Below, one piece after another: positions 11,501 through 44,283 of a stretch of 64,000 nt of DNA. Origin of the DNA: Pecten maximus (lineage: Eukaryota); assembly GCF_902652985.1 (NCBI RefSeq), contig NC_047030.1, positions 14,198,001 through 14,262,000 on the forward strand, read 5' to 3'. Each line of letters starts with the position of its first letter. Position 1 is the stretch's first letter. Under the pieces are notes generated by a model, which had not been told where the DNA came from, searched no databases, and worked only from the letters and a program-made list of their open reading frames with translations. Made by a program: the position numbers and the translations under genes.

Positions 11501-13145
11501 ATGATATAAATGTATGTATTTGGTATCTTTTTACTATTAATTTAACAAATAAACAAAACCCTGAATCGTGACAGACACGTGTATCTAAAACGTTTATCTA
11601 TAAAAATCTTAAGTTAACTATACATGAAATTATATATGAATTAAGTTATAGTTGTAATATATTCTATAACTTTCATTTTAATGGCCACAATCTAATTCCT
11701 TAAATTCCATGTTCAATTCGCAATTTGACACCGTAGAGCTCTCACTTTCTATTTATTTCCATTTATAGAATTGTGTGGCAACTGGGGCAAATGAGAAATA
11801 TCAGTCCTGTGTTTAGAAACGATACAGTATCATCAGTTTACCTAAACTGTCTCTTTAGCATTTTAACATAACTATTGAAGTTAATGATATATTTATATCT
11901 GAAACTTACCCTTCGACGGAGGTAGAATATGAGTAGGACAAAGGTCACCATACTTGTGGTGTAGATGATCATGTCCCATCCTTTCCCTGCGATAGCCATC
12001 CATTTATATGGCAAATCGGCGTCTTCTAAACACACCTTGATCCAACACCAAGGGCCGGTTCCGATACTGAAGTTTTCCCCCAGCATATTTTTCGACAGAG
12101 CAGCCAACGTGATGGCCCCTGAATATACAAGTTATATTGATTCCAAATGTTGTATGTCATGCAGAAACAGAACGGAATATTTGATTGTTTATAATATAAT
12201 TGTAGAGTTAACTTGTACTTAAGACAACTGAAGCAGTATTGGAAATGGCTATAAAACTTATCTGCAATGGTAGAATCAAGCAAACTTTCAAGGTTCAACA
12301 TTAGGCAGTATCAGAATCGAGAAATACTATACTCAAGGTTGAATTGTCGGTACTATTATAATATGCCATATTTTGATTGAAGATTTAACTGAAAGAAATA
12401 CTCAATGTTCAACATATTTACTTTACTGTAAGTAATAAAACAATAGGACTTCGATATGATGCTGAACAAAAAATAACTGAATATAATGTTTTGATCAAGT
12501 GTGAAATGGGGTCAGTGAGTTAACCCCGCTTAAGAACGTTCAATAAACTCTGTAATGCTTTGATTCCCATGGTAACTTTTAAATTAAGGAATTTCCTTAT
12601 GTTAAAGAACGTTAATGAAATCGGGGCCTGGAACATCCATTGAGCCTACCTGGAAGACCCCAACATATGATATGGGCCTTGAGTTCATTCCAAGGTCTTT
12701 CAGGATCTTCAACTGCACAAGTAGGCCGAAGACTAACGATGAGGTGGGCGCCGATTACTAGCGTCCAGAAGAAGGACGCCATTCCCGAGAATGTGGTGAT
12801 CATGCTTTGGGCTACACAGATTTCATCCGGAAATTTACATAAATGTTCGTGTTCGTCGAAAGAGATAGTCCGTGAATGCTGATGAATGAGGGCGTACCTT
12901 ACCGTTCCTATCAGGATACCTGAGGCAGTCATGATGTCGGCGACAGTTAGGTACATCAACAAGCGACGAGTTTGTCTGATCCGAGCGTTACGGACATCAA
13001 CATTGTACGTCAAAAATATAATGGTAGCCCCAATGATGGATAGACAACTACTTACTCCAGATAGGGAAAGAGCCACACTGTCCAGGAGAAGACGTGATGC
13101 AGGTCCTAAGGGCGTTATCGATGTCGTGGTATTGTTAAAATTCAT
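8504..13145 (-). CDS. GPR157: GPR157-like / cAMP-receptor-like 7TM GPCR, 365 aa (exons 13145-12650, 12118-11910, 8896-8504)
   Basis: Three ORF-track fragments join with canonical GT-AG and matching phases (496+209+393=1098 nt). Family motifs: SSCLSIIG (TM1), LLMYLTVAD (TM2), CVAQS...SFFWT (TM3), HIICWGLP (TM4), WCWI, GKGWD (TM5), QSFCDGLQAFCNCIVFVF (TM7). Orthology to vertebrate GPR157 itself is not established. Confidence 0.88.
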
Positions 13146-20474: not shown

Positions 20475-22923
20475 TAATAGAATCTATCGCTAGTTAGTGT
20501 GTGGGATAGAGAAATCTCAACCACGAAGGTTTAGTTTTTGTCCAGGACGAGGCTTGCCGAGTCCTGGACTAAAAATCTAAACCTGAGTGGTTGAGATTTC
20601 TCTATCCCACACACTAACTAGCGATTGATTATTTTTCTCACACTTGTGACAGAGTTTATATTGCATAAATTAGTATTTCCTGTAGCAATTAAACCATTTT
20701 AGATGTTGGCGCAGTAATACGTTCAGCACTACTTCCACTTCCTGTCTGTCGGTCAACTTCCTGTTGTCTGTCTGTCAACTTCCTGTTGTCTGTCTTCTGC
20801 TTCAGTTCATCATATTGTATTCTGAAATGGAAAAAAACATTTAAGATTGGTGATTATGTGACTGTTGGTGCAGGTGGTAAGAAAGGAAAAATTGTAAACA
20901 CTGAAAAACCCTTGGGTACATACACCATGTACAAAATACAACTGTTAGATGGTGGAAATATTGTAAGTGCTGCCAGGCATGAACTGGTTAAAGGAATGCC
21001 CATGGATGAATTCGATTTTGGTCAAATATTTGGAGAGGAACTTGCAGACAAGTATGATCACTCTCTACTTCATGATATATTTGATACACCTACTCACACA
21101 GATAATGGTCATGCACAAATACAATCTGAGAATTCTGCGGCTACAGGTTCATCCCTACCCCCAGATCCTTCATTTCCAAATTCTGCCAAAACTGGTCAAG
21201 ATTCCACTTCTAGATTTGTTCCTATTGATGATGGTGATGTGGAGAAATTTTTGAATGAAAATAAAAATAAAAACACAGCAAGAAAAACATTGAGCCATAT
21301 AAAACTGTTGAAAACATTTCTGGAATCCAAAAATGAGGTTAGAGAACCCCAAAACATACCGCCTGAACAGCTTAATGAATATCTGTGTCAATTCATCATC
21401 TCTGTCAGACAAAAAGATGGTAAGGAGTATCAGCCGTCAGTATTGCGAGGAATGATTGGTTCTTTTGACCGCCATTTGAAACGACACAAGTATGAGTGTA
21501 ACATAATTGGAGGGTTTCCTTTTTCTAAGACAAGGGATGCGTTGAAATCTAAGCAAAAGGACCTAAAAAAACAAGGGCTTGGAAATAAACCTAAAGCAGC
21601 TGACCCAATCACTCAAAAAGACATTGAACAATTTTACAGTGCTGGTCAACTTGGAAATGACACACCCTCTAGTTTAATCAATACCCTTTGGCTGAATAAC
21701 ACTTTGCATTTTGGCATGAGAGGTGGTGCTGAAGAGCACAGAGCCATGCGTTGGGGCGACTTGGAGCTTAAATACGATCACAATTTGGGCTTAGAATATT
21801 TAACACATAACGAGAGACAGACAAAAACCAGAACCGGTGCTGACCTTACCAATATTCGTTATTCAAACCCAAAAATGTATGAACTACCCGACAAAAAAGA
21901 CCGCTGTCCAGTCACGACTTACAAAAAATTCTCGGACAAACGACCAGCTGGTTTCAGTCAACCACATCATCCATTTTATTTAGCTGTGGTTACACATGTG
22001 GCCAATCCAACTGATGAGGAGAAATGGTTTTTAAGTGGACCTATTGGTGTAAACAAACTGAGATCTCTGATGTCAACAATGATAAAAAAATCAAACATGA
22101 ATGACGAAGGCAAACGACTTACCAACACTAGCGCCAGAAAACATCTCTGTCAACTTCTGCTGGACAACAACGTGCCCGACACACTGGCTGTGCATTGGAC
22201 CGGCCATAAAAACCCAAACTCGCTGAACAATTACAGAACTGTGTCTTCAGAAACTCAGTTGCATGTCTCGAACATGTTGTGTGGAATTACTCGCCCTTGC
22301 TTACCGAATGAACGGATATCCGGTCTCCAGTCGTCGACGCAGTCAAGCACAACGAAACACACTGTAAACACTAGTACTTCCAGCACGCTGAGATCTGTTT
22401 TTGACGGTGCCACGATTCACGGGGGCACTTTTAACGTTCATATTCATAACCATAGCCAAAAACGCCCAGCAAAACGAAGGAGACCAGCTTTAGTCTTCAG
22501 TGATAGCGATGACGACTTCCAGTGACCTATACATTGGTACATTGTATTTATTCTAACCACAGGGGCCGGTGATTCTAACCTTAACGTTAAGCTAATATTA
22601 GCGTGTTTCGGAGTACACAGACTGACGTTTTCGCTTAAATTAATTTACCGGAAGAATTTCAATGTGTATATTGATGAAAATAAAATTCATTGTATTTATT
22701 CAAAATTTTCTTTTTATGTTATTTGATTCCATGCAATTTATTTAAAATAACAGTTGAAAAAAAAACGAACTATATTTTTTTGAGGAAGAAAAAAATCCTT
22801 CGATTTCAAGAGATTGCTGCGGTTGCATTGTGACGTCATAGCACGAGCTGTCCCACCCTAGGTTGGGACAGGAATATCCCCAACTAGTAAAACTACGGGA
22901 AAACTCTGTCACAAGTGTGAGAA
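20475..22923 (+). mobile_element. Crypton (tyrosine-recombinase DNA transposon), apparently full length, no TSD
   Basis: 5' hairpin 20481-20630 (loop ACGAGGCTTGCCGAGT). Perfect 24-bp inverted repeat at 20634-20657 / 22901-22924. Single YR ORF, AATAAA at 22679, subterminal palindrome at 22848-22871. The flanks rejoin as GGGTGTGAT^ATCTCTGTC, an intact satellite unit. Confidence 0.9.
20786..22525 (+). CDS. Crypton tyrosine recombinase (DUF3504 / ZMYM-KCTD1-QRICH1-related family), intronless
   Basis: 579-aa ORF. Core-binding region NTARKT...LCQFIISVRQKDGKEYQPSVLR. Catalytic motifs FGMRGG (R), ERQTKTRTG (K), RCPV, TNTSARK (HxxR position) and TGHKNPNSLNNY (H, Y). C-terminal basic NLS-like and acidic tail. 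The probable true ATG (20827) is 1 nt out of frame across an A7 run. Confidence 0.92.
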   Translation: MSVFCFSSSYCILKWKKTFKIGDYVTVGAGGKKGKIVNTEKPLGTYTMYKIQLLDGGNIVSAARHELVKGMPMDEFDFGQIFGEELADKYDHSLLHDIFDTPTHTDNGHAQIQSENSAATGSSLPPDPSFPNSAKTGQDSTSRFVPIDDGDVEKFLNENKNKNTARKTLSHIKLLKTFLESKNEVREPQNIPPEQLNEYLCQFIISVRQKDGKEYQPSVLRGMIGSFDRHLKRHKYECNIIGGFPFSKTRDALKSKQKDLKKQGLGNKPKAADPITQKDIEQFYSAGQLGNDTPSSLINTLWLNNTLHFGMRGGAEEHRAMRWGDLELKYDHNLGLEYLTHNERQTKTRTGADLTNIRYSNPKMYELPDKKDRCPVTTYKKFSDKRPAGFSQPHHPFYLAVVTHVANPTDEEKWFLSGPIGVNKLRSLMSTMIKKSNMNDEGKRLTNTSARKHLCQLLLDNNVPDTLAVHWTGHKNPNSLNNYRTVSSETQLHVSNMLCGITRPCLPNERISGLQSSTQSSTTKHTVNTSTSSTLRSVFDGATIHGGTFNVHIHNHSQKRPAKRRRPALVFSDSDDDFQ

Positions 22924-30269: not shown

Positions 30270-30445
30270 AATCTAGACATATCCATACCTCATGTATGCT
30301 GGAACAGTCCGTAGTTTTCCGTAACATTCTGGCCAAAATTTCGAATCGAAAGGATTTCACTGACGAATTCGATTCATTTTGGTCAGAATGTTACGGAAAA
30401 CTACGGACTGTTCCAGCATACATGAGGTAAGGATAGGTCTAGATT
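30270..30445. mobile_element. Fold-back / MITE-like near-perfect inverted repeat
   Basis: ~70-bp arms (AATCTAGACATATCCATACCTCATGTATGCTGGAACAGTCCGTAGTTTTCCGTAACATTCTGGCCAAAAT and its near-exact reverse complement) with a short loop. Confidence 0.75.
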
Positions 30446-30780
30446 TTGTAGAGACGGCTGCCATCTCTATTATGTTTGAAGCAAATACTTTGTAGAGACG
30501 GCCGAAATGTCTTTTATGTTTGAAGTATATACTTTGTAGAGACGGCCGAAATGTCTTTTATGTTTGAAGCATATACTTTGTAGAGACGGCTGCCATCTCT
30601 TTTGCGTTTGAAGGTTATACTTTGTAGAGGGGACCACCATGTCTTTTATGCTTGAATATATATTTTGTAGAGATGACCACCACCTCTCTTATGTCTGAAG
30701 CATATTCCTTGTAGAAACGTCTGCCATCTCTTTTGTGTTTGAAGCACATACTTTGTAGAGACGGCTACCATCTCTTTTCA
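30446..30780. repeat. 44-bp minisatellite, about 8 copies
   Basis: GAGACGG recurs at 30451, 30495 and 30539. Unit approximately TACTTTGTAGAGACGGCYGMMATSTCTTTTATGTTTGAAGCATA. Confidence 0.85.
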
Positions 30781-33765: not shown

Positions 33766-36700
33766 CTACTTGTCTACTTTGAATGGAATCGCAATGTTAG
33801 TTTCGTTCTTGTTTTGCATGAAACCAAAAACGATTGGTTCGGCTTCTTTCAAGGACTTTCCTTGCAAATATCTAGAAGCTCTTTGCAGTTTTTCTCTCAC
33901 CTTGGGGTTACGTGATGGAAAGAAAAACTCTTCTACAGCGTCATTCTTATCACCAGTGTCATCTCCCGTGCAGTCGTCAGGTGGTAAAACTGCATCAAAA
34001 ACACTTGGTAGATTCTCGATGTTTTCCTGATTTAGAATGTTCAATTCCTCAGCAAAGGACTGGCTGGAAGATTCATTGCATATATCTATAACAGTTTTGT
34101 CTTTGTCATCACTACAATAAGGATCCGCCCCAAAGATCATCAGAATGGTCAAACGGCACAGGCGTTCCACGGTCTGCATTTTAGTGAATCCATTTACAAA
34201 TTCGAGACAGTTGTGAAGTGGTGTTTTGCCCAATATGTCGACCGTTTCGACTGCATAGCGTTGTTTCAGCAACATATTAAATGTCTGAATTCGAGATTTT
34301 GTTGCATGACATGCCGCTTGATTTAATACTGTCCTTCCTCTTGTTGTCTTTAATATCCACTTTCGGTTTAGTTTCGAAAAGTATTGAAAGTATGTCGCAC
34401 ACTTCGTCATCGAACATCTCGCTTTCTACGCAATAATGAAGCGCTGTTTTGCCAAATCGATCCCTCATATTTGGGCTTGCTCCGCTAGCGAGAAGGTGTT
34501 TCAATGTGTTCTGCTTTCTTTTCCTGACGCTTTCTATTACTGCAGTACGATGTATTTCGTTCATTTGGTCAATAGGCGGTTTCTCTTCCGTTAAGATAGC
34601 CTCTATACATAACTTTGTATCTTCGTCTGATCGATCTGACATGACGATCAAAGGTAAGTATGGCTCTTTATTGTTCATGCTGCTGAATTTCGCCAATTCT
34701 GCCAGGAGAGTGGCTTTGCAACGCGATTTGCATGCAGATAGTAAAACTGTGTCCCCGGAATTTGTTCTACTATCTAGATCAAACCCTAGCTTTCTAAGAG
34801 GTCCGACAATATTCGCTTCAACCTCTTCAGAGAATTCCTCTTTGATATAAAAAGGCGTCATCTTTTCCTTGCATTCATCCTCTATTGCAATCTCGTTACA
34901 CAACAACGAAGTAAGCAAGTCAGATGTCAGTTTATTTTTTTCTTTTATTATTTCTAAAAGGCCATCGGTCATTACCATAGAGGATGCTTTGAGAAGAGTA
35001 CATATTGTTTTCACTCGATTACATCGAGATGATGCAGCCAGTGTAAGAGGTGTATTTCTGTTTTGATAGTCCTCCTCTGTTACAGATGCCCCGCGTTCTA
35101 TCAATATCTGACAAAGAGAGCTTGTGCTTTCATCAGACATCGATGATTCAACACAGGCATGAAGCAAACAGCGACCAAATACGTTTTCGTGTTGTCGGTA
35201 GGCATGTCTACTATCCTCAGATATATCTTCATTATTCTCTAAACATATTTCATCAAATTTCCGAAGGCACTTTTTGGCTACTGCTAATACAGTGTCATCT
35301 TCCAAAGTAGAATGCACTAATAAATGCAACACCGTTTTCCCATCGGAATCTGTTCTACCAACATCAAAGTATATGTCCACTAGCTTCATCAAAAGGTCTG
35401 GATGTTTCTTATTCATGATCGCAAGCATCAATGGAGTGTGTTTAGCTGGTGTTTCTTTCAATTCATCATCGGTCAGCAATAGGTCCACCATGTCTACAGC
35501 GACATTGCTTTCCATGTCTGCCAAACAACAGTAATGTAGTGGAAGCAGTCCTTCTGTATCTGTCATATTTTTGTCTGCGCCATTCTTCAAAAGAAGGTCA
35601 ACAAGACCTAGATTATCTTTAGCTTCTTTTATTGCTAACATTATTGGTGTCGCTCCCTCGTCATTCTGTTGGTTAACATCAGCCCCTTCTTTGATCAACA
35701 CCTCTATAACATGTTCTTTGTCTGTGTTGTTTAAATCTAGCGTGATACAATAATGCAGCATAAAGTCTGTGGCATGACTGTCTGAGGCATGCTTGCATTT
35801 GGCGAGAATCCCGAGAGTTTTGATACGACTCTTTCCTTTAGATATCACTGCTTGGATAGATGATCTGCCATCTTTTACCACTTCGTTAGGATTTACCCCA
35901 TGTCGAATCATTTCGGATACTCGTTGTGATACAATATTGTCTTCAATTTCAGATTGCACACAGTGATAAAGGGCTTCCGTCCGGGTTTCCTTGGTACACT
36001 TTTCTGAAAGTTTGGCGATACATTTAATGCCACATTTGACTTGAAGGACTGCCATTCCTAACGGTGTTTGTTCTTCCATGTTTTTACAAGACAGAAGAGC
36101 AGGCTCGTTTGTTAGGGCCGAAATTGTTTCAGACATTGTATCCGAAGGAGTCGAGGAAGACAAAGCAAAGTGTAGGTAATTGTTTTCATTTTCATCTTTT
36201 TCTAGAATTGGAAAGTGTTGTCGTTGCATTGCTTTCAGCAGTTTTTGGCTCAATCCAATAGTTTTGATGCAACAGGAAATCATGCTTTTCTTGTTTTCGT
36301 CTGAGTCATCCTCGAGCATCTTGACGCCTATTCCTAATTGAACAAGATTCCCGTCAATCTCATGTCCATCTTTTTCAACATAATTGGAACATTGCATTTT
36401 TACAAATGAGCTCGTACACATCATCGTCTCCTCTTCCTGTGCTGCTGCGGCTAGAAGACTCCAAAATCCCCATCTAGAATGTGGATCCTGAGCACCTGCT
36501 TTAAGTAGTATATGTAAGCATTCCTCATCGTTTGTGTTGAGGACCCATCGGAGTGGAAATGAATGATCACGTGTGTCGCTGTCTTCAGAGCATGTGCAGT
36601 AGCTACAGCGAGCGCCCGCCGAAACAAAAAACTGCAGAATATCTGCCGCTTTAAATTCTTTCTCTACTACATGAAACGTACTGTTTATGGTTTCGCATGT

Positions 36701-38388
36701 TCGCAACAGATAGCTTGTCATGGTGGCAATCCTACGTTCATCCTCGTAGCCCCGAAGAAATCGTTCGATTGCTTCACATAGTGGCAGACAACGGTAACGA
36801 ACTGACCATTCTAGCAGCCTCTTGATACATGCATCGAGTAGGTCAGGTTCCTTGTTACAGTGGGTTTTGCATAAGACCATGATACGCTCAATGAAATAAG
36901 GATCCACCCAGGCATCACTTCTATGCAGTGCTGCTGTGTGATCATTTATCATGTCTTCAAAAAACCTACTGGCGAGAATGTCTTTGTGGGGTTCGTGTAG
37001 CAAAGGGCAATTCATCCCTTGTTGTCCTGTACATTTGAACACGGCTGTATCACACAGTGTTTCCTGGTTTAGATTCCAGATGGAAAGCTTAAGAAACCTC
37101 TCAACGGCAAAAGAAATGACCGCTTTTTTGACAGTCGTGTTCTTCAATGTAAATTTTTTCTTTACACTGGTAACCAGTTCCTCAGTTTCTAAGTATTCAG
37201 CGGCGTCTTGCAACTGCTCCATATGCTTTTCCTTGCAAAGAGATTGACCATACTCGTATCCAGATAAGCGCTGCTTAATTTTCAGTATCTGTTCCTCAGT
37301 AAATGAAATTGGCTTTTCCTCAAACAACAGGGCCAAAAGTATGATGGTATTAGCGTTACGCTCAGAGCATCTTTTAATCTCCTCTCGGTAGTATACGACT
37401 GGTGATCTAAAAAAGTCTGCACCAAACTTTCTAAAACGTTCGTTCTTTGCAAACAGAAATGCTGCTAGGGGAAACGGAATTGGATTTTTAGATACTCTTG
37501 CAATATTCTCTAGAGTCATTTCATTTACTGATTTGTCGTGCTTTTCAGAAAAACGTTCAAGTTGTTTTTGTACAAGAGAAAGTTTTTCTTGATAACCAAG
37601 GCACAGTGAATCATCTTCAGGGTCTGCTAGATCTACTTGATTAGTCAGATTAGCAATTTTTGTTACATTTTCTAACCCTGATGTCATGATAATATACAAA
37701 CCAGTTTGCTGATCTGAATCAATGAATTCTCTAATAACCTTTTTTAAACTTGCTGGATCGGATTCAGGTCTTATTTCAGAGATTTCCACTAATGTTATAA
37801 CAAAACCCCTAGGATCAATATTATTCAAAAACTCAGATATTGAATGTATATTGTACACTTTACATTTTTCACTAAACTTGAGCAACCTAAACATCAAATG
37901 ATATGATAATGCCGTTTTACCACAGCCTTTTCCGCCTGTTATCAGTATGTGGTGATGTTTTTGTAGAAGCTCCCAAGCTTTCTTTGATAATTTCGTCTCC
38001 ACATAGAAGCGTTCTTCAACTTCATGGTTTTCAATGAGCATCTTAGTCTGAGCTGTGAAGTTGAAATATCATTTATCAGTACAAATAATAGCACATTTAT
38101 TACATATTTAGTTGTATTTCATTTTCTTAAATTAGTTGGTTCTTATATCCTTGGTCACATACTATCGTGAAATTTAAATTGAAATCAAACTGCTAGGTAA
38201 GATTTGAAACTAAATTGATTTTAACACAAACAATGATCAGAGGAAGGAACATAACCATCACAACAAGCATAAACGTTTCTAGCTGTTTCAAATATTTCAC
38301 TTCCTCAATGTGTCTAAATCGTTTTAGCTCTTATTACCTTCTTGTCCTCCAAGGTTGTTGTTTAGTTTCTCAAACTCTGTGATAATTT
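33766..38388 (-). CDS. STAND-class P-loop NTPase (nSTAND3-like) plus long ankyrin-repeat region (exons 38388-38338 and 38052-33766; +1 frameshift near 34341)
   Basis: FYVETK...ILITGGKGCGKTALSYHLM (Walker A at 37913-37936), post-NTPase PFPLAAFLF...FFRSP motif, then many ankyrin repeats (GATPIMLAI, GKTVLHLLV, GKTALHYCV, GKTPLHNCL). Removing one A joins the 1254-aa and 214-aa ORFs as DIKDNRGRTVLNQAA. The 51-nt exon is phase 1-1. Confidence 0.9.
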
Positions 38389-38692
38389 CTGAAAGTAAAA
38401 CACGATAATAAGCATTTCATGTATCGAAGTTTACTAAAGTTTTCAAGTGTTATTTAACTGATTTATTTTTAAGATAGACTAAATATGTTGACTTTTGATA
38501 CTGAAATACTACGGTGTGTCATAATATTATTAACGGTTATCAGATATTTCACACATCTTAGTGAGACTGTTTGTGATTTGATTATACGAAAATGTTAAGT
38601 CATTGGTTATGTAGAAATAAGAATTCCTAGAAATATCAGAGAACTGTAATACATAATATCGTTATAAGACTGGTTGCCGTTTTGTAATTGGT

Positions 38693-39192
38693 NNNNNNNN
38701 NNNNNNNNNNNNNNNNNNNNNNNNNNNNNNNNNNNNNNNNNNNNNNNNNNNNNNNNNNNNNNNNNNNNNNNNNNNNNNNNNNNNNNNNNNNNNNNNNNNN
38801 NNNNNNNNNNNNNNNNNNNNNNNNNNNNNNNNNNNNNNNNNNNNNNNNNNNNNNNNNNNNNNNNNNNNNNNNNNNNNNNNNNNNNNNNNNNNNNNNNNNN
38901 NNNNNNNNNNNNNNNNNNNNNNNNNNNNNNNNNNNNNNNNNNNNNNNNNNNNNNNNNNNNNNNNNNNNNNNNNNNNNNNNNNNNNNNNNNNNNNNNNNNN
39001 NNNNNNNNNNNNNNNNNNNNNNNNNNNNNNNNNNNNNNNNNNNNNNNNNNNNNNNNNNNNNNNNNNNNNNNNNNNNNNNNNNNNNNNNNNNNNNNNNNNN
39101 NNNNNNNNNNNNNNNNNNNNNNNNNNNNNNNNNNNNNNNNNNNNNNNNNNNNNNNNNNNNNNNNNNNNNNNNNNNNNNNNNNNNNNNNNNNN
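38693..39192. other. Assembly gap (500 N)
   Basis: Round-number N run; the true size is unknown. Confidence 0.99.
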
Positions 39193-39869
39193 AGCAAATA
39201 TATATATTTTCAGAAACTGGGCAAACTGGTGTACACTGCTACCTCATAAAAGGCTGAAAAAAGTTATTTGAAAATAAAAACGTGATTTATTATGCATGGT
39301 TAAGCTTCCTTCACATGAACTATTGTTCAAATTCACATAAAACATTTTAAAACATTGCTCATTACCTAATTTTCATCAGTGATAGAAAAAGGGAGATAAC
39401 TCGCTCACCTGTTCTTGATATTAAATTACCTGGGTAATTATAATGTACTAGTCATATATATATATTAATGCTTTTATTTTCCTAAAGTTCTATTCATGAT
39501 CGATCAATTATCGATATGATGATGATCGATCATGAACTTATTAGTTTCCAAAACTACTGAAGAAGTTGCAAAATTTTCAAGTAAACAAAAAAGACAATTT
39601 CCCAATTTGCTCGACATGAACCACTGACAAAGACACTGATACTGACTTTGAACTATGGGGAAAGTCTCAAAATATCAATTTAATGAAATGGCTATGTCAA
39701 ACACACAAACAATTTTCCTTCTCTCATTTGTATCATTATGCTCGACTGGGGAATTCATACAAAAAAGGGATTTTCCTTGCGCAAGTGTGATTAATTAACA
39801 ATTTTCTCCAAGATTGATATCGGGGCGATTCGATTCCCATCAAATCTTGGATATTCCTATCTGAAAGAG

Positions 39870-40632
39870 TTTATCCTATTTTTTCGAGGATATTTGTCCA
39901 AATGTAGATATTGTCGAATTGCTATGAAATTCGGTATGTGGGTAGACTACATCATGGGACACCAGTTACTTGTAACCTCACTTTAAACATTTTTTAAAGA
40001 AAATGACAGCCATTTGAAATGGTTTCCCAGCCTCTGATTGGTCTAAATTAAGATATTGTCTGATTTAAATGAAATTTGATATGTAGGTACATCATGGGAC
40101 ACTGTCCCTCTGGTCACCTCATTTTCAAGTTTTACCAAAATAGTCATCATTTCCTGGCCTCTGAATGGTCCAAATTTAGATATTGTTTGAATTCAATGAA
40201 ATAGGGGTATTATGGGACAGCAAATTCAGCTGTATGGGATTCATTTCCTTAGCAACAAGACAGTTTCACTTATTTTTGTTTAACGTCCTATTAAAAGCCA
40301 GGGTCATTTAAGGACCTGCCTGGTTTTGGTGGTGGTGGAAAAGCTGGAGTACCCGGAGAAAAACCACAGACCTACGGTCAGTACCAGGTAACTGCCCCAC
40401 GTCACGTGGGTTTCGAACTCCCAACCCTGAGTTGGACAGCTAGGCTACCCTTGTGATAAAATGTTGGGACACCTTAACCACCCGGCCCTCGCGACCTAAC
40501 AATTAACACATAGTCCTATTATTGGTTGAAATAGATATTGAGCGATTTTGATGAAAAGTGCCGAACAGAGTTAACGCCCCTCACTACGCTTCATTCTTTC
40601 TGTGACATCCTTCAGGTGTCGCCCAACTAGTA
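39870..40632. mobile_element. Helentron/HINE-like non-autonomous repeat with ~130-bp internal units, interrupted by a SINE
   Basis: Recurring GGTCCAAATTTAGATATTGT...ATGAAATT.GGTATGT.GGT...CATCATGGGACAC units. Family assignment is by resemblance only. Confidence 0.4.
40272..40496 (-). mobile_element. tRNA-derived SINE, near full length
   Basis: On the minus strand: A-box-like GGCCGGGTGGTTAAGG, B-box GAGTTCGAAACCC, core GGTTTTTCTCCGGGTACTCCAGCTTT, tail GGACGTTAAACAAAAA. Confidence 0.8.
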
Positions 40633-42669
40633 TGAAGACACGGAAAATATTTCGATGGAAACTATGGATACAATACTGTAACAGTTGTAAAGTTGTTCTT
40701 GCTGCATATCCCAATGGAAAGACTCATGTAGGAATTTACGCATATTTACTCTGTTTATAATTTCATTAGGTGCATGTTTTGTTGAGGCCCAAATATTTTG
40801 TATTGTCAATACTTTCTTTTCTTTCTTTTATTGTAAAATAAAATATATGTGTATATATAAATTTACCTCTTCAAATTCAATATTCAAGTTCCGCAATTGC
40901 GTACAATGTGAACAAAAACTCATTGGTGTGTGTATTGAGAACGTATACTATGTATAATTGAGAGATGTGTCGCTATGCGTATGTATCGATAGACTGATAC
41001 TTGTCTCAATGAATGCACGCGCTTCTATAGCGGTTCGTATCCACGCATAACAAAAAAGGGAAAATGTCTGCCCGTCCTTAGATACGACACTATCATAACT
41101 GGGGATTGTCTCGGATACGATTTTTGGAAATCTGTACATGTATTTTTTTTTTTTAAATCTTAATTGGATGCTTTTTAACTTGCACTGTCAGCTTTAACTC
41201 TACTGGCTATATATCTTTCTGTGACTCATCCGTCAATCATTACAATATCGTGAATTTTATTGACCATTTCTGGGGTTGCAACATTGACAGGCCTTCCTTG
41301 ACGGGGGATCCTCCTCAAGTCTCTGTTTGCGGCGCTTAAATTCCGCCATCCACCTTTTAACTGTAGCATATAAAGGGGCATCTTTCCCTTGTGTTGCTAC
41401 CATATCATTTTGGATATCAATATAAGTGTTAAACCTTTTTTATGCAAATATTGGATCACTGCTCTTTCACTGATTTTGACCATTTTACAAATGCCGCGCG
41501 TCTTGTTTACGTTAGAGTGCTAACCAAATGTGACTAGTCCGTGGGTTCATGACCTTATAAAGTCAGGGAGTAGTATGGCATAAAAAGGACATCTTTGAGT
41601 AACTCTTTCAAAACAAAGCTCACAACTTGTCAATCATCATTCGTATCTTATTGCACTGATCTTTGCGACCATAGGATTTTGGCAACAGGCATAGCCTCTT
41701 AAAGTCCTCTCCATATAAGGATAACATTACATGCACATCATTACACCAATATGTATCTATACTATTTCACATTAGTTAATACTATGTTAAATTGGGGAAC
41801 TATTATAATAACATTAGATTAAACAAAATAAACCATCGTATATCAATCCTTTAATTTATATCAATTTATAAATATTAACTTTGACAAGCTATTGTTTACC
41901 ATTCTCTAGACTTTGAACTCACATCCTATTTATTTACAAGTATACTGTACACAAACTCACACATTTGTCAATAAAATGTAGTAAAAGATATTGTCAAAGT
42001 GTGTGGGAAGATGTCCGGACAAGATTTAAAAACTCAAATAAGATAGAGCTTATCAAGATTTTTGCAAAGAGTGTTGATTAAAATGCCGATCCAAATAATA
42101 CAGCTTTATATGATTATAAAGTCCTTTAAGATCATCAAATGTTAGTAGATCTCCGAACAGAAATCAAATATTAAAATAAAGCATAATAATATAGTTTAAT
42201 CAAGATAAGCTAAATATCTTGTTTCTAACGCTATCATGTAAAATGTGTCAAAGACAATCACTTGAATATGTAGAAGATAATAATTTAATTAAATCAGTGA
42301 AGTGAATTAAAGTACTCTTTTTTTAATTATAACTTTCAATTGTAGATTAAGAAGACACAGCTACAGTATATATTTGTTTTTATAAAAAAAACTACTGGGC
42401 CTCAATGAGATCGGTTGAAACACGGCGAAGATCTTCGGTCAAGGTTCAGGTAGTGAAATGAACAATAGACAACTAATTTGGCAAAACAAATATAGTAGAA
42501 TCAAAATGCTGATCAGCAATTTTATATCAAGAGTAACCGGTAAGCGGAGGCAAACCCAGGACAAACAAAATGTATGCCGGATGGCTCGTTTAGACTAAAA
42601 ATGCAGAAACATAAACGCTATTTAAGTACATGTATTAGTATTCTGGTATGGAAAGGAAAATATAAATAC

Positions 42670-44283
42670 CTGCTTCCAAAAGTTCTTTTTCCAGTTTTTC
42701 AACATCTGTTGGTTTACATGCATACATGATACGGTCTACTTTCCTGCCATACGTCGGCTGTAGTCCAATGCACTTTTCCACAGCTTCGAAAACTTGTTTG
42801 ATATCCCTGCATTTCTGTTGAAACTCATCATCAGCTGGCACATGCGATAGTTCAATGTGCGAAATGTGATTACGAAACTGTCGAAGTTTGTCAACACATG
42901 CCTGAAGGCTGAAATCTGATTTCAGAGGTTTTGTGTTCCATATGCTTGGTTGAATTAAAATTTCATCAGTAAGAAAATTTCTTGCAATTACATACATCAA
43001 GGTCACGTCTAAATGTTCGTAAGAAATATCACTTTTGTATAAGCAGTCTTTATGCATATTATACAGTTGTTTGCATTCACTTTCAAATTTAGTTTTTCGA
43101 TCTTCTAATCTTAAAAGTTTTCTCAAGTGTTCATCGGATTTTCCAAAAGGATTCCTATTTTTCAATATTTCGCGCATCATTTCCTGGCATGTGTATGTTG
43201 AGAGATACCACACTCTCATGCCATTGAAAGATTTGCCATTAAATATGGTTGATGTGGATTTGTCTTCTGTTTGTTCACTTTGACATTCAGGGATGGACAT
43301 TTCACTGATCTTTTCTTCATCTTCCACCCCCTCAGCATGTCCTTGGTCACTTCAAGATATAACAATACATATGACTTTCAACATTGCTGCTGTCTCTTAA
43401 ACTCTTTCTTGCGTGGTTTGCTAGACATAAGTATTTGATAAATTCAGATGTAGTAACATAGAATCTGACGGTGCTGGTGAAAAAGATCCAGCATTTAATA
43501 TGTTATAACTCTCAATAAAAGCATACAGAAGACCACGGTAGGGTGCGATAAAACTTATTTTGCATTCTAACATAAATATATCAAAACATTGTTATTCAGA
43601 TATATAATCAAGATAGTAACGTAAGTTATAATTATATGAAATATCCTTAAGATTTATCAATTGTACTAATTAATACTTTTTTCTTAAAATATACTAATAG
43701 AAAGTCATTGTTCATTTAGCATGTATAATGTACATATAATTATTCTTTGCAAAAGGAGGTGTTTCTTGATCCAATATATTCGTAAAAATCGTATAGTTCA
43801 TTTAATAAACAATATCAGAATCAGTTTGATGATGCCATAATCTTCTTACATGACAGTTCTTGGCTAGAGCAAATGTGTTGATGCTATATTTCTTGTTTGT
43901 ATGACTAATGTTAGGATATAGGTTTAAATAGCAAAGACGCTTATACAGGTATTAGCATGTTTTGTCTTGTCATAAATTGAAATTTTTTTGCAATACATTT
44001 TTTTCTAGAAATCGAATTTAGATAAAACCTAATCTCATCTTGTTTCTATTTTTTATTTTAATGTATCTATCTGTACTGTAATATTAACAGTAACATATGA
44101 TGAAATGTGTATTGCTAGTACTTACAGATCCACAACTTCCTGGTAAAGCCAAGATTTTTTATTTTCATCTGCATTATCGTTTTGGTCCTCTGCGGTATGC
44201 TCTTCTTCTGCAGACTGTTGTTGGGTAACCCCTTCCGTCTCTGACGACGTGGGTTGATATGACCGATCCACTCCGTTCCACAT
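42670..44283 (-). CDS. N-terminal exons (44283-44126, 43349-42670) encoding an acidic linker and a DZIP3-like HEPN domain; likely the same gene as the STAND-ankyrin exons
   Basis: MWNGVDRSYQPTSSETEG...EVVD joins by a phase-2 GT-AG intron to LDQGHAEGVEDEEK.... The domain shows LDVTLMYVIARNF, PSIWNTKP and DKLRQFRNHISH (Rx4H at 42857-42874). The phase-1 donor at 42670 fits the exon at 38388. Total 5175 nt, about 1724 aa, if no exon is hidden in the gap. Confidence 0.82.

Follow-up and report, generated by a model that had tools for sequence, protein, structure and literature searches.

A very probable single gene across the HEPN, STAND and ankyrin exons

Within the 64,000-nt stretch of Pecten maximus DNA analysed here (the window), the minus strand carries exons for a HEPN domain, a STAND NTPase and a long ankyrin array, and the question raised by this locus is whether they form a single gene and, if so, what kind of protein it encodes. 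The exons fall within LOC117344596, a minus-strand gene at 44283-33769 that is already annotated in RefSeq, without prior study, as encoding a protein of 1575 aa. In what follows, P0001 is this RefSeq model, P0002 and P0003 are its scallop orthologues, and P0004-P0006 are scallop paralogues; all supporting gene models are predictions. The parts of the gene from exon 1 to the stop codon are as follows.

44126-44283, minus strand: coding exon 1, residues 1-53, acidic and of low complexity (tblastn of P0001, 100% identity); ATG at 44283-44281, donor GTAAGT at 44125, ending in phase 2
42670-43349, minus strand: coding exon 2, carrying the HEPN_DZIP3 domain and its Rx4H motif RNHISH (Pfam PF18738, sequence); acceptor AG at 43351-43350, donor GT at 42669-42668, ending in phase 1
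38693-39192, no strand: run of 500 Ns within the intron that separates the HEPN exon from the mini-exon
38338-38388, minus strand: 51-nt coding mini-exon for 17 residues of helical linker (sequence, tblastn); flanked by acceptor AG at 38390-38389 and donor GT at 38337-38336, in phase 1 at both ends
34280-38052, minus strand: large coding exon with the end of the linker, the nSTAND3 NTPase, a helical and winged-helix region and the ankyrin array (Pfam, acceptor read from sequence)
34279-34277, minus strand: in-frame stop closing the large exon

The visible exons are 100% identical to P0001, and an in-frame stop lies 36 nt 5' of the exon 1 ATG. In RefSeq the model consists of five coding exons (44283-44126, 43349-42670, one of 63 nt outside the visible sequence, 38388-38338 and 38052-34280), and the arithmetic agrees, as 1575 aa need 4725 nt and the visible exons total 4662 nt, leaving a shortfall of 63 nt. 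The original prediction, which had assembled four phase-compatible exons into about 1724 aa, had thus overlooked the 63-nt exon; its last exon junction is moreover a +1 frame break at 34334-34353 rather than an intron.

We are highly confident that the locus is one king scallop gene, coding for a protein that starts with an acidic segment and continues with a HEPN_DZIP3 domain, a short linker of helical character, an nSTAND3 NTPase with a helical/winged-helix module, and at least ~750 aa of ankyrin repeats. For the best explanation as a whole, comprising the gene, its architecture and, by analogy, its mode of action, we estimate a probability of about 0.7.

A very likely join between the HEPN and STAND exons at the N run

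The N run presumably hides one 63-nt coding exon, phase 1 at both ends, that encodes RefSeq residues about 281-301. No 5-mer of these residues was matched in any frame of the visible window, an equivalent linker segment is present in the orthologues, and the splice phases flanking the N run agree (1/1). The mini-exon, with an identity by tblastn of 90% to P0001 and 60% to each of the two orthologues, has no Met, and coding sequence must therefore extend upstream of it.

The same arrangement is found in full elsewhere. P0001 carries PF18738, PF20720 and Ank; the entire HEPN-nSTAND3-ankyrin architecture lies on a single chain in the Mizuhopecten (1746 aa) and Argopecten (1816 aa) orthologues, and the three paralogues P0004-P0006 likewise have it on one chain. 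Of the 21 nSTAND3 exons scored in the genome studied here, 7 are preceded on the same strand, at a distance of 1.5-17 kb, by a HEPN_DZIP3 exon. Because Pfam, the RefSeq model, two orthologues and recurrence in the genome all support the architecture, it is very likely that the HEPN and STAND exons are joined across the N run, and the HEPN-STAND-ankyrin order first proposed from the letters alone is upheld by the same four lines of evidence.

It is very improbable that the N run instead conceals a gene boundary, with the HEPN exons and the STAND-ankyrin exon belonging to two neighbouring genes. An ATG at 38041, where the NTPase begins, could serve as the start of a separate second gene, but such a gene would leave unexplained the conserved mini-exon with its splice sites and its 60% identity to the orthologue linkers, as well as a HEPN exon that runs without a stop to a donor in matching phase. 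The fusion is, moreover, seen in six scallop proteins, and the same-strand arrangement is repeated at seven further loci of the genome.

The STAND NTPase and the ankyrin array

With the exons taken as one gene, the central part of the protein was identified by profile and by predicted structure. The nSTAND3 profile (PF20720) matched at 56.5 bits against a gathering cut-off of 27.2 (E 3.4e-15, profile positions 1-145 of 155), and the predicted Walker A motif was located within this match, in exon 38052-34280, as GGKGCGKT; Walker B reads VITLVE. The Walker A residues G43, G45 and K46 are the same in all 22 sequences compared, and the E or D of Walker B is kept in the orthologues, P0004 and P0005 and is absent from P0006. 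A helical and winged-helix region of about 500 aa is followed by the ankyrin array, whose length had also been anticipated correctly (Ank_2, E 1.7e-32 by Pfam, in the same exon).

An AF2 model of the NOD (first 520 aa of the large exon) reached a pLDDT of 82.5 and, in Foldseek, matched SAMD9, Avs5, NLRP14, the wheat and NRC2 resistosome proteins, MalT, Apaf-1/Dark, NOD2 and Avs4 with a probability of 1.00. TM-scores to solved STAND proteins were 0.2-0.36, as expected for multi-domain chains, and highest to Avs5.

The NLR-like label given to the gene by the original prediction holds for the layout and fails for the parts: at E <= 0.1 Pfam listed 17 families without NACHT (PF05729), the NTPase being matched best by nSTAND3, and no LRR was matched in Pfam, the C-terminal 750 residues matching ankyrin families only. 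Nor was there a Pfam match to Pkinase or KEN (Ribonuc_2-5A), and the HEPN domain is N-terminal.

A frame break near the 3' end

Close to the end of the ankyrin array, the frame that matches the orthologues changes.

34334-34353, minus strand: +1 frame break, the orthologue-matching frame shifting within 20 bases (tblastn of P0003 and P0002)
33769-34353, minus strand: out-of-frame C-terminal tail of ~195 aa, with two more ankyrin repeats and a conserved C-terminal region (tblastn, alignment)

Both P0003 and P0002 change frame here in tblastn with overlapping residue numbers, while the RefSeq model keeps the old frame past this point and ends at stop 34277. The tail frame is open to a stop at 33768-33766, gives tblastn E values of 2e-43 and 3e-41 with the orthologues P0003 and P0002, and shows weak Ank matches in Pfam. 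It aligns with the C-termini of P0003, P0002, P0004 and P0005, and for the first two of these the alignment extends to the final residues.

We rejected a short intron at this position: the two frames overlap and the orthologue residues continue unbroken, which leaves an intron no space, and the sole GT...AG pair would span ~32 nt. The position is a one-base frame break, either in the assembly or in the animal, and in the reference sequence it would cost the protein its last ~190 residues.

Were the break real, the gene would be a truncated or decaying allele in the sequenced animal, having lost its two final ankyrin repeats together with the conserved tail that follows them. We regard this as unlikely. 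The break does stand in the assembly, RefSeq accepted the early stop, and the assembly holds a single copy, without an intact second one; against decay, the +1 frame is uninterrupted over ~195 codons and aligns to the orthologue ends through the last residue, as would fit a change of very recent date or an error of one base in the assembly, and there are no stops in the remainder of the gene.

A conserved member of a large bivalve family

The gene, so read, is a member of a large bivalve family in which DZIP3-type HEPN domains are fused to STAND NTPases and repeat arrays, and which has been described computationally since 2013. This family and its predicted RNase role were published by Anantharaman (2013, PMC3710099) and Takeuchi (2022, PMC9646362). 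The original prediction had proposed a combination of NLR and RNase L logic; this combination is not new, as the same prediction is found in PMC3710099 (Table 1, section 16) and in PMC9646362. A HEPN-STAND-repeat protein is therefore ordinary in kind, its architecture, bivalve expansion and RNase-effector logic all being in print.

The proposed paralogue count returned at least 64 HEPN_DZIP3 exons in the Pecten maximus genome, and LOC117344596 itself proved to be single-copy and outside the clusters. Orthology is 1:1:1 across three scallop genera, with 55-61% identity spread evenly over the HEPN, NOD and ankyrin parts; such even conservation is unlike that of a fast-evolving sensor. For a dN/dS comparison, protein identities this low would mean saturated synonymous sites. 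When the whole STAND exon, or the first 500 residues of it, served as the query in word-based protein searches, only six scallop relatives and generic ankyrin proteins were retrieved.

The DZIP3/hRUL138-like HEPN fusions of bivalves and other invertebrates in these two papers share with the scallop protein the N-terminal PF18738 domain with an Rx4-6H motif and N after R, the central STAND NTPase, the C-terminal repeats and the expanded bivalve lineage. They differ in having NACHT or another STAND domain and LRR, TPR or WD40 repeats, whereas LOC117344596 has nSTAND3 and ankyrin. The tandem clusters of this same genome are dominated by RNEAYGH (Rx5H), in contrast to the Rx4H of LOC117344596, which scores 44 bits and forms a single-copy, divergent orthogroup.

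In the literature that could be searched, no bench test of an animal HEPN-STAND protein is reported. Single-copy, conserved across scallop genera and intact in its motifs, LOC117344596 is a cleaner candidate for a first assay of RNase activity and oligomerisation than hundreds of fast-changing tandem copies; beyond this value it brings nothing new in kind.

The HEPN domain as a candidate RNase

HEPN_DZIP3 (PF18738) matched at 44.0 bits against a gathering cut-off of 27 (E 2.5e-11, profile positions 14-120 of 144), so that in the proposed Pfam check both this domain and nSTAND3 exceeded their curated cut-offs (44 vs 27 and 56.5 vs 27.2 bits). In the genome scan the same copy scored 44.8 bits and was one of the weakest among the 64 matches, beside scores of 80-105. 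The Rx4H motif (RNHISH; R159, N160, H164) is intact, as had been predicted, and lies in exon 43349-42670 within the Pfam match. Across 21 paralogous exons its N and H are invariant and its R nearly so, and FRNxxSH or FRNxxAH is retained in 6/6 scallop family proteins.

Structure prediction gave an all-helical AF2 model (pLDDT 79.8) for which Foldseek found no match at E <= 0.001. VIA-align placed it near Csm6 (4rgp, Z 7.3; 5yjc, Z 5.4), AbiF (8vz6, Z 5.8) and a HEPN protein (2hsb, Z 5.8), amid unrelated helical bundles of equal Z; comparison of the HEPN profile with the sequences of solved structures yielded chance-level matches only, and a predicted complex of two HEPN copies (residues 36-226 of the exon) scored 0.02, a value that speaks neither for nor against pairing.

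Rather than a nuclease, the domain could be an RNA-binding or protein-interaction module within a signalling or housekeeping scaffold of unchanged architecture, a minority reading to which we give roughly the same low weight as to allele decay. It would suit the low Pfam score beside the expanded paralogues, the position outside the clusters, and the even conservation over domains with stable 1:1:1 orthology; inactive HEPN families are listed in PMC3710099, and the literature searched held no biochemical test of any DZIP3-type HEPN and no report of RNA cleavage by one. The motif nevertheless behaves as expected of an active site, its R, N and H being invariant in the six scallop family proteins and nearly so in the 21 paralogous exons, and PMC3710099 rates the DZIP3 family 'mostly conserved' for Rx4-6H.

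Known systems and a proposed mode of action

Several characterised proteins resemble the scallop protein in part. SAMD9 and SAMD9L are animal STAND-type NTPases with helical repeats that control an RNA-cutting effector in antiviral defence. For the NOD model, Foldseek ranked human SAMD9/SAMD9L (PDB 9zjs and related) first (E 3e-6, probability 1.00); the effector of SAMD9/SAMD9L, however, is not HEPN, SAM and other N-terminal domains are present, and at a TM-score of 0.26 and 13% identity close kinship is unsupported.

Bacterial Avs5 (AVAST type 5, SIR2-nSTAND3-repeats; PDB 9jap, 9nc9), whose NTPase is Pfam nSTAND3 (bioRxiv 10.1101/2025.07.08.663546), shares both the NTPase family and the layout of effector, NTPase and helical repeats, and gave the best TM-score among the Foldseek matches (0.36). 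Its effector, in contrast, is a SIR2 NADase, its repeats are TPR/Sel1/PPR, it is bacterial, and its identity to the scallop protein is only about 10-12%.

RNase L (ankyrin - pseudokinase - KEN/HEPN) carries, like the scallop protein, ankyrin repeats and a HEPN-superfamily RNase on one chain, and its activation, in which ligand-driven self-association pairs the nuclease domains, follows the logic proposed here. The domain order is reversed, however, and the scallop protein has no kinase-like domain and no Pfam match to KEN, its switch being a P-loop STAND NTPase. Canonical animal NLRs (NACHT-LRR) share the tripartite effector-NOD-repeats layout, with Foldseek matches to NLRP14, NOD2, NLRP3 and NLRP9, but their effector is a death-fold adaptor, whereas that of the scallop protein is predicted to be enzymatic; Pfam gave the scallop protein neither a NACHT profile match nor an LRR.

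By analogy with these systems, STAND oligomerisation may pair the HEPN domains into an RNase, a proposal for which we see about even odds. The ankyrin array and an ADP-bound NTPase would hold the protein in a closed state; a ligand on the ankyrin repeats would trigger nucleotide exchange and STAND oligomerisation, as in Avs5, Apaf-1 and NLRs; the oligomer would bring the N-terminal HEPN domains side by side, and the paired Rx4H motifs could then make up an RNase site that needs no metal, as RNase L, Csm6 and Cas13 do. Cutting of cellular or viral RNA would arrest translation or kill the cell. All of these steps, from ligand sensing through oligomerisation and HEPN pairing to RNase activity, are inferred by analogy, as is an immune role, and the description of the protein as a ligand-triggered RNase immune receptor is pure inference.

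A possible membrane-tethered 5' extension

Upstream of the gene, FN3-like and transmembrane exons at 63413-61684 (minus strand) might splice into exon 1 and yield a membrane-tethered FN3-TM-HEPN-STAND-ankyrin receptor. If true, this would be a single-pass receptor whose extracellular domain connects to a HEPN-STAND-ankyrin module inside the cell; among NLR-like proteins outside this bivalve family no such layout is known. We consider such an extension doubtful, somewhat more so than a decaying allele or a non-nuclease HEPN domain. The RefSeq model and both orthologue models begin without a hydrophobic segment, the fn3 match is below threshold (E 0.0055), and the FN3-like exons, when searched in the genome, had no copy beside other HEPN exons. 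The distance to exon 1 is a 17 kb gap, yet only transposon-like open frames were recognised between 61684 and that exon. The transmembrane exon is closed in phase 1 by a good donor (GTAGGT at 61684), and an AG after a pyrimidine-rich stretch, 10 nt 5' of the exon 1 ATG, offers a matching phase, an agreement that has a one-in-three chance of arising by itself.

Gene model and domain content

The LOC117344596 locus is a real gene with confirmed domains, lying on the minus strand of the king scallop chromosome-scale contig C16 (C16:14198001-14262000), its visible exons 100% identical to the 1575-aa RefSeq protein P0001 ("uncharacterized protein LOC117344596 [Pecten maximus]"). Alignment of P0001 to the window (tblastn), together with splice sites read directly, gave the following exon map.

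Coding exons of LOC117344596
44283-44126, minus: exon 1, donor GTAAGT
43349-42670, minus: exon 2, HEPN, phase-1 end at a GT donor
not in the visible sequence, minus: exon 3, inferred length 63 nt
38388-38338, minus: exon 4, 51-nt mini-exon, phase 1 in and out
38052-34280, minus: exon 5, phase 1 in, followed by a stop

Pfam was run on each exon singly, and the alternative 3'-end frames were searched separately. HEPN_DZIP3 (PF18738) was found in the open frame 43327-42638 (E 2.5e-11, 44 bits, cut-off 27), and nSTAND3 (PF20720) in the first 159 residues of a 1254-aa open frame at 38041-34280 (E 3.4e-15, 56.5 bits, cut-off 27.2), downstream of which several ankyrin families matched (Ank_2, E 1.7e-32). 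Both families named for checking in the original prediction thus exceeded their cut-offs, and the long ankyrin array, the RNHISH motif (in the HEPN exon) and the Walker A motif (GGKGCGKT, in the NTPase) that it described were all recovered. Its "NLR-like" label holds for layout only, since the NACHT and LRR domains of canonical NLRs were both absent from the exons in Pfam.

Probable continuity across the N run

A run of 500 N (38693-39192) lies within the intron separating the HEPN exon from the mini-exon. The visible exons total 4662 nt, against 4725 nt for 1575 codons; the 63-nt shortfall corresponds to RefSeq residues ~281-301, and no frame of the visible sequence contains a 5-mer from them. 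The run is preceded by a phase-1 donor and followed by a phase-1 acceptor; the annotated model calls for exactly one extra phase-1/phase-1 exon of 63 nt, and both scallop orthologues carry a matching helical linker at this position. Because the phases match, 63 nt are missing and the orthologue linkers agree, the preferred reading joins both sides in one gene, in frame, with a small exon concealed by the run. Since the mini-exon lacks a methionine and matches the orthologue linkers at 60% identity, the coding sequence cannot begin at the NTPase.

The same architecture recurs elsewhere. HEPN_DZIP3, nSTAND3 and ankyrin matches share a single chain in the orthologue from Mizuhopecten yessoensis (P0003, 1746 aa, 56% identical). 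The precomputed Pfam list for the Argopecten irradians orthologue (P0002, 1816 aa, 58% identical) has nSTAND3 and ankyrin without PF18738; in alignment, the N-terminal region of this protein is nevertheless 54% identical to the HEPN exon, and FRNxxSH is retained there. All three Pfam families stand on a single chain in three remoter scallop paralogues, and among the 21 nSTAND3 exons scored in the P. maximus genome, 7 are preceded on their own strand by a HEPN_DZIP3 exon at a distance of 1.5-17 kb. Judged from gene models and comparison, the HEPN-to-STAND link drawn across the gap in the original prediction is very likely, although the hidden exon had been missed.

Frame break at the 3' end

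The predicted four phase-compatible exons of ~1724 aa were reproduced only by omitting the hidden exon and leaving the large exon's frame for the +1 frame near 34340, where the last junction proved to be a one-base frame break within 34334-34353 (minus), late in the ankyrin array. An intron at this point was rejected: the open frames overlap at 34410-34277, orthologue residues run continuously over the break (tblastn with P0003 reaches residue 1557 in one frame and resumes from 1551 in the other), and the sole GT...AG pair spans ~32 nt. The RefSeq model continues in the original frame, and its protein terminates at 34280. Beyond the shift, the +1 frame (34353-33769) stays open for ~195 codons and aligns to the C-termini of the orthologues and two paralogues, reaching the last residues with both orthologues; for this reason the break is either a mistake in the assembly or a truncating lesion or allele of very recent origin. 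The assembly contains only one copy of the stretch.

HEPN and NTPase modules

In an alignment of the HEPN exon with 20 paralogous HEPN_DZIP3 exons of the P. maximus genome, the motif N and H were invariant and the R nearly so, with RNEAYGH (Rx5H) in most expanded paralogues versus Rx4H in the orthogroup of LOC117344596. An AlphaFold2 model built from the paralogue alignment was all-helical (pLDDT 79.8). Foldseek returned no match for it, and an exhaustive aligner gave Csm6 (Z 7.3 and 5.4), AbiF (5.8) and an archaeal HEPN protein (5.8), with unrelated helical bundles scoring equally and the aligner itself warning that Z below ~13 is common for such folds. With HEPN folds and unrelated bundles scoring alike, HEPN membership is assigned from the Pfam profile together with the motif.

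The orthologues and paralogues P0004 and P0005 keep both Walker A and Walker B; the two motifs are degenerate in P0006, the most distant paralogue, where Walker A reads GKE for GKT and Walker B lacks its acidic residue. The first 520 residues of the NTPase exon were modelled with AlphaFold2 at pLDDT 82.5, and the resulting NOD (STAND NTPase plus helical/winged-helix module) matched solved STAND and related AAA+ proteins with probability 1.00, including human SAMD9 (E 3e-6), Enterococcus Avs5 (4.5e-5, best TM 0.36), NLRP14, plant resistosome proteins, MalT, Apaf-1/Dark, NOD2 and Avs4. The Avs5 NTPase is itself Pfam nSTAND3 (preprint, bioRxiv 10.1101/2025.07.08.663546), which, with the structural match, makes Avs5 the closest experimentally studied relative of the scallop module.

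Family context and proposed mechanism

The DZIP3/hRUL138 HEPN family is "mostly conserved" for Rx4-6H, is fused to ankyrin, CARD, NACHT, Death and LRR domains in animals, and shows lineage-specific expansions in Nematostella, oyster and Capsaspora; with RNase L as the analogy, its NACHT/Death modules were proposed to couple HEPN activity to defence or apoptosis (Anantharaman et al. 2013, PMC3710099). N-terminal DZIP3-HEPN/NACHT proteins are over-represented in bivalves, with more than 50 in the pearl oyster and Rx4-6H logos given (Takeuchi et al. 2022, PMC9646362). This fusion also occurs in corals and Aplysia. LOC117344596 therefore adds one member to a known HEPN-STAND kind, the family being already published; we found neither this gene nor its orthologues named in the literature, nor, in the literature searched, a bench test of any DZIP3-type HEPN family member.

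HEPN_DZIP3 exons number at least 64 in the P. maximus genome, and nSTAND3 candidates up to ~190. The former are clustered, with 15/64 on C16 and 14/64 on C5 (clusters at C16:35.5-36.8 Mb, C5:8.7-27.3 Mb, C19:27.6-28.0 Mb, C9:18.0-18.15 Mb and C3006), and most read RNEAYGH at 80-105 bits; the divergent Rx4H outliers are the window copy and two on C5 at 25.95-25.99 Mb (region of paralogue LOC117327671).

At the level of sequence, the locus has the domains, intact catalytic-type and nucleotide-binding motifs, motif conservation and single-chain architecture. By analogy with Avs5, Apaf-1 and NLRs, and with RNase L, Csm6 and Cas13, the ankyrin array would hold the NTPase closed until a ligand opened it, and the opened NTPase would oligomerise, allowing the N-terminal HEPN domains to pair and cut RNA. 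An immune reading is tempered because the gene is single-copy, lies outside the tandem HEPN clusters, and has HEPN, NOD and ankyrin parts equally conserved between scallop genera (55-61%), an evenness that does not resemble the pattern of a fast-evolving sensor.

Possible upstream exons and surroundings

Seventeen kb upstream, on the same strand, lie further candidate exons.

Candidate upstream exons
63413-63171 and 62989-62741, minus: FN3-like open frames, fn3 E 0.0055, below threshold
61775-61684, minus: transmembrane exon, acceptor AG 61777-61776, donor GTAGGT after 61684, phase 1

These may form a separate gene or a 5' extension of the HEPN gene. Splicing into exon 1 is unlikely: the phase-1 donor at 61684 would fit a possible acceptor AG 10 nt upstream of the exon 1 ATG (44283), but the RefSeq model and both orthologue models contain no hydrophobic segment. 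The FN3-like exons are unique, with no further copies in the P. maximus genome.

Other open frames and repeats in the window
56936-56175 and 55096-54758, minus: Harbinger/PIF-type transposase frames between the transmembrane exon and the HEPN gene, DDE_Tnp_4 E 4e-22 and 6.5e-10, HTH_Tnp_4
41260-41403, minus: short open frame in the large intron, weak Mos1/mariner HTH_48 match (E 0.0056), probably a decayed mariner fragment
30445-30778: tandem repeat, period 44 (or 131), 7.6 copies, 80% matches
20786-22525, plus: 579-aa open frame, DUF3504 (E 1.9e-20) and a weak phage-integrase match, Crypton-like recombinase
12612-13145, minus: 177-aa open frame, Frizzled (E 1.1e-6) and 7tm_2 (E 8.7e-5), probably an exon of a GPCR gene
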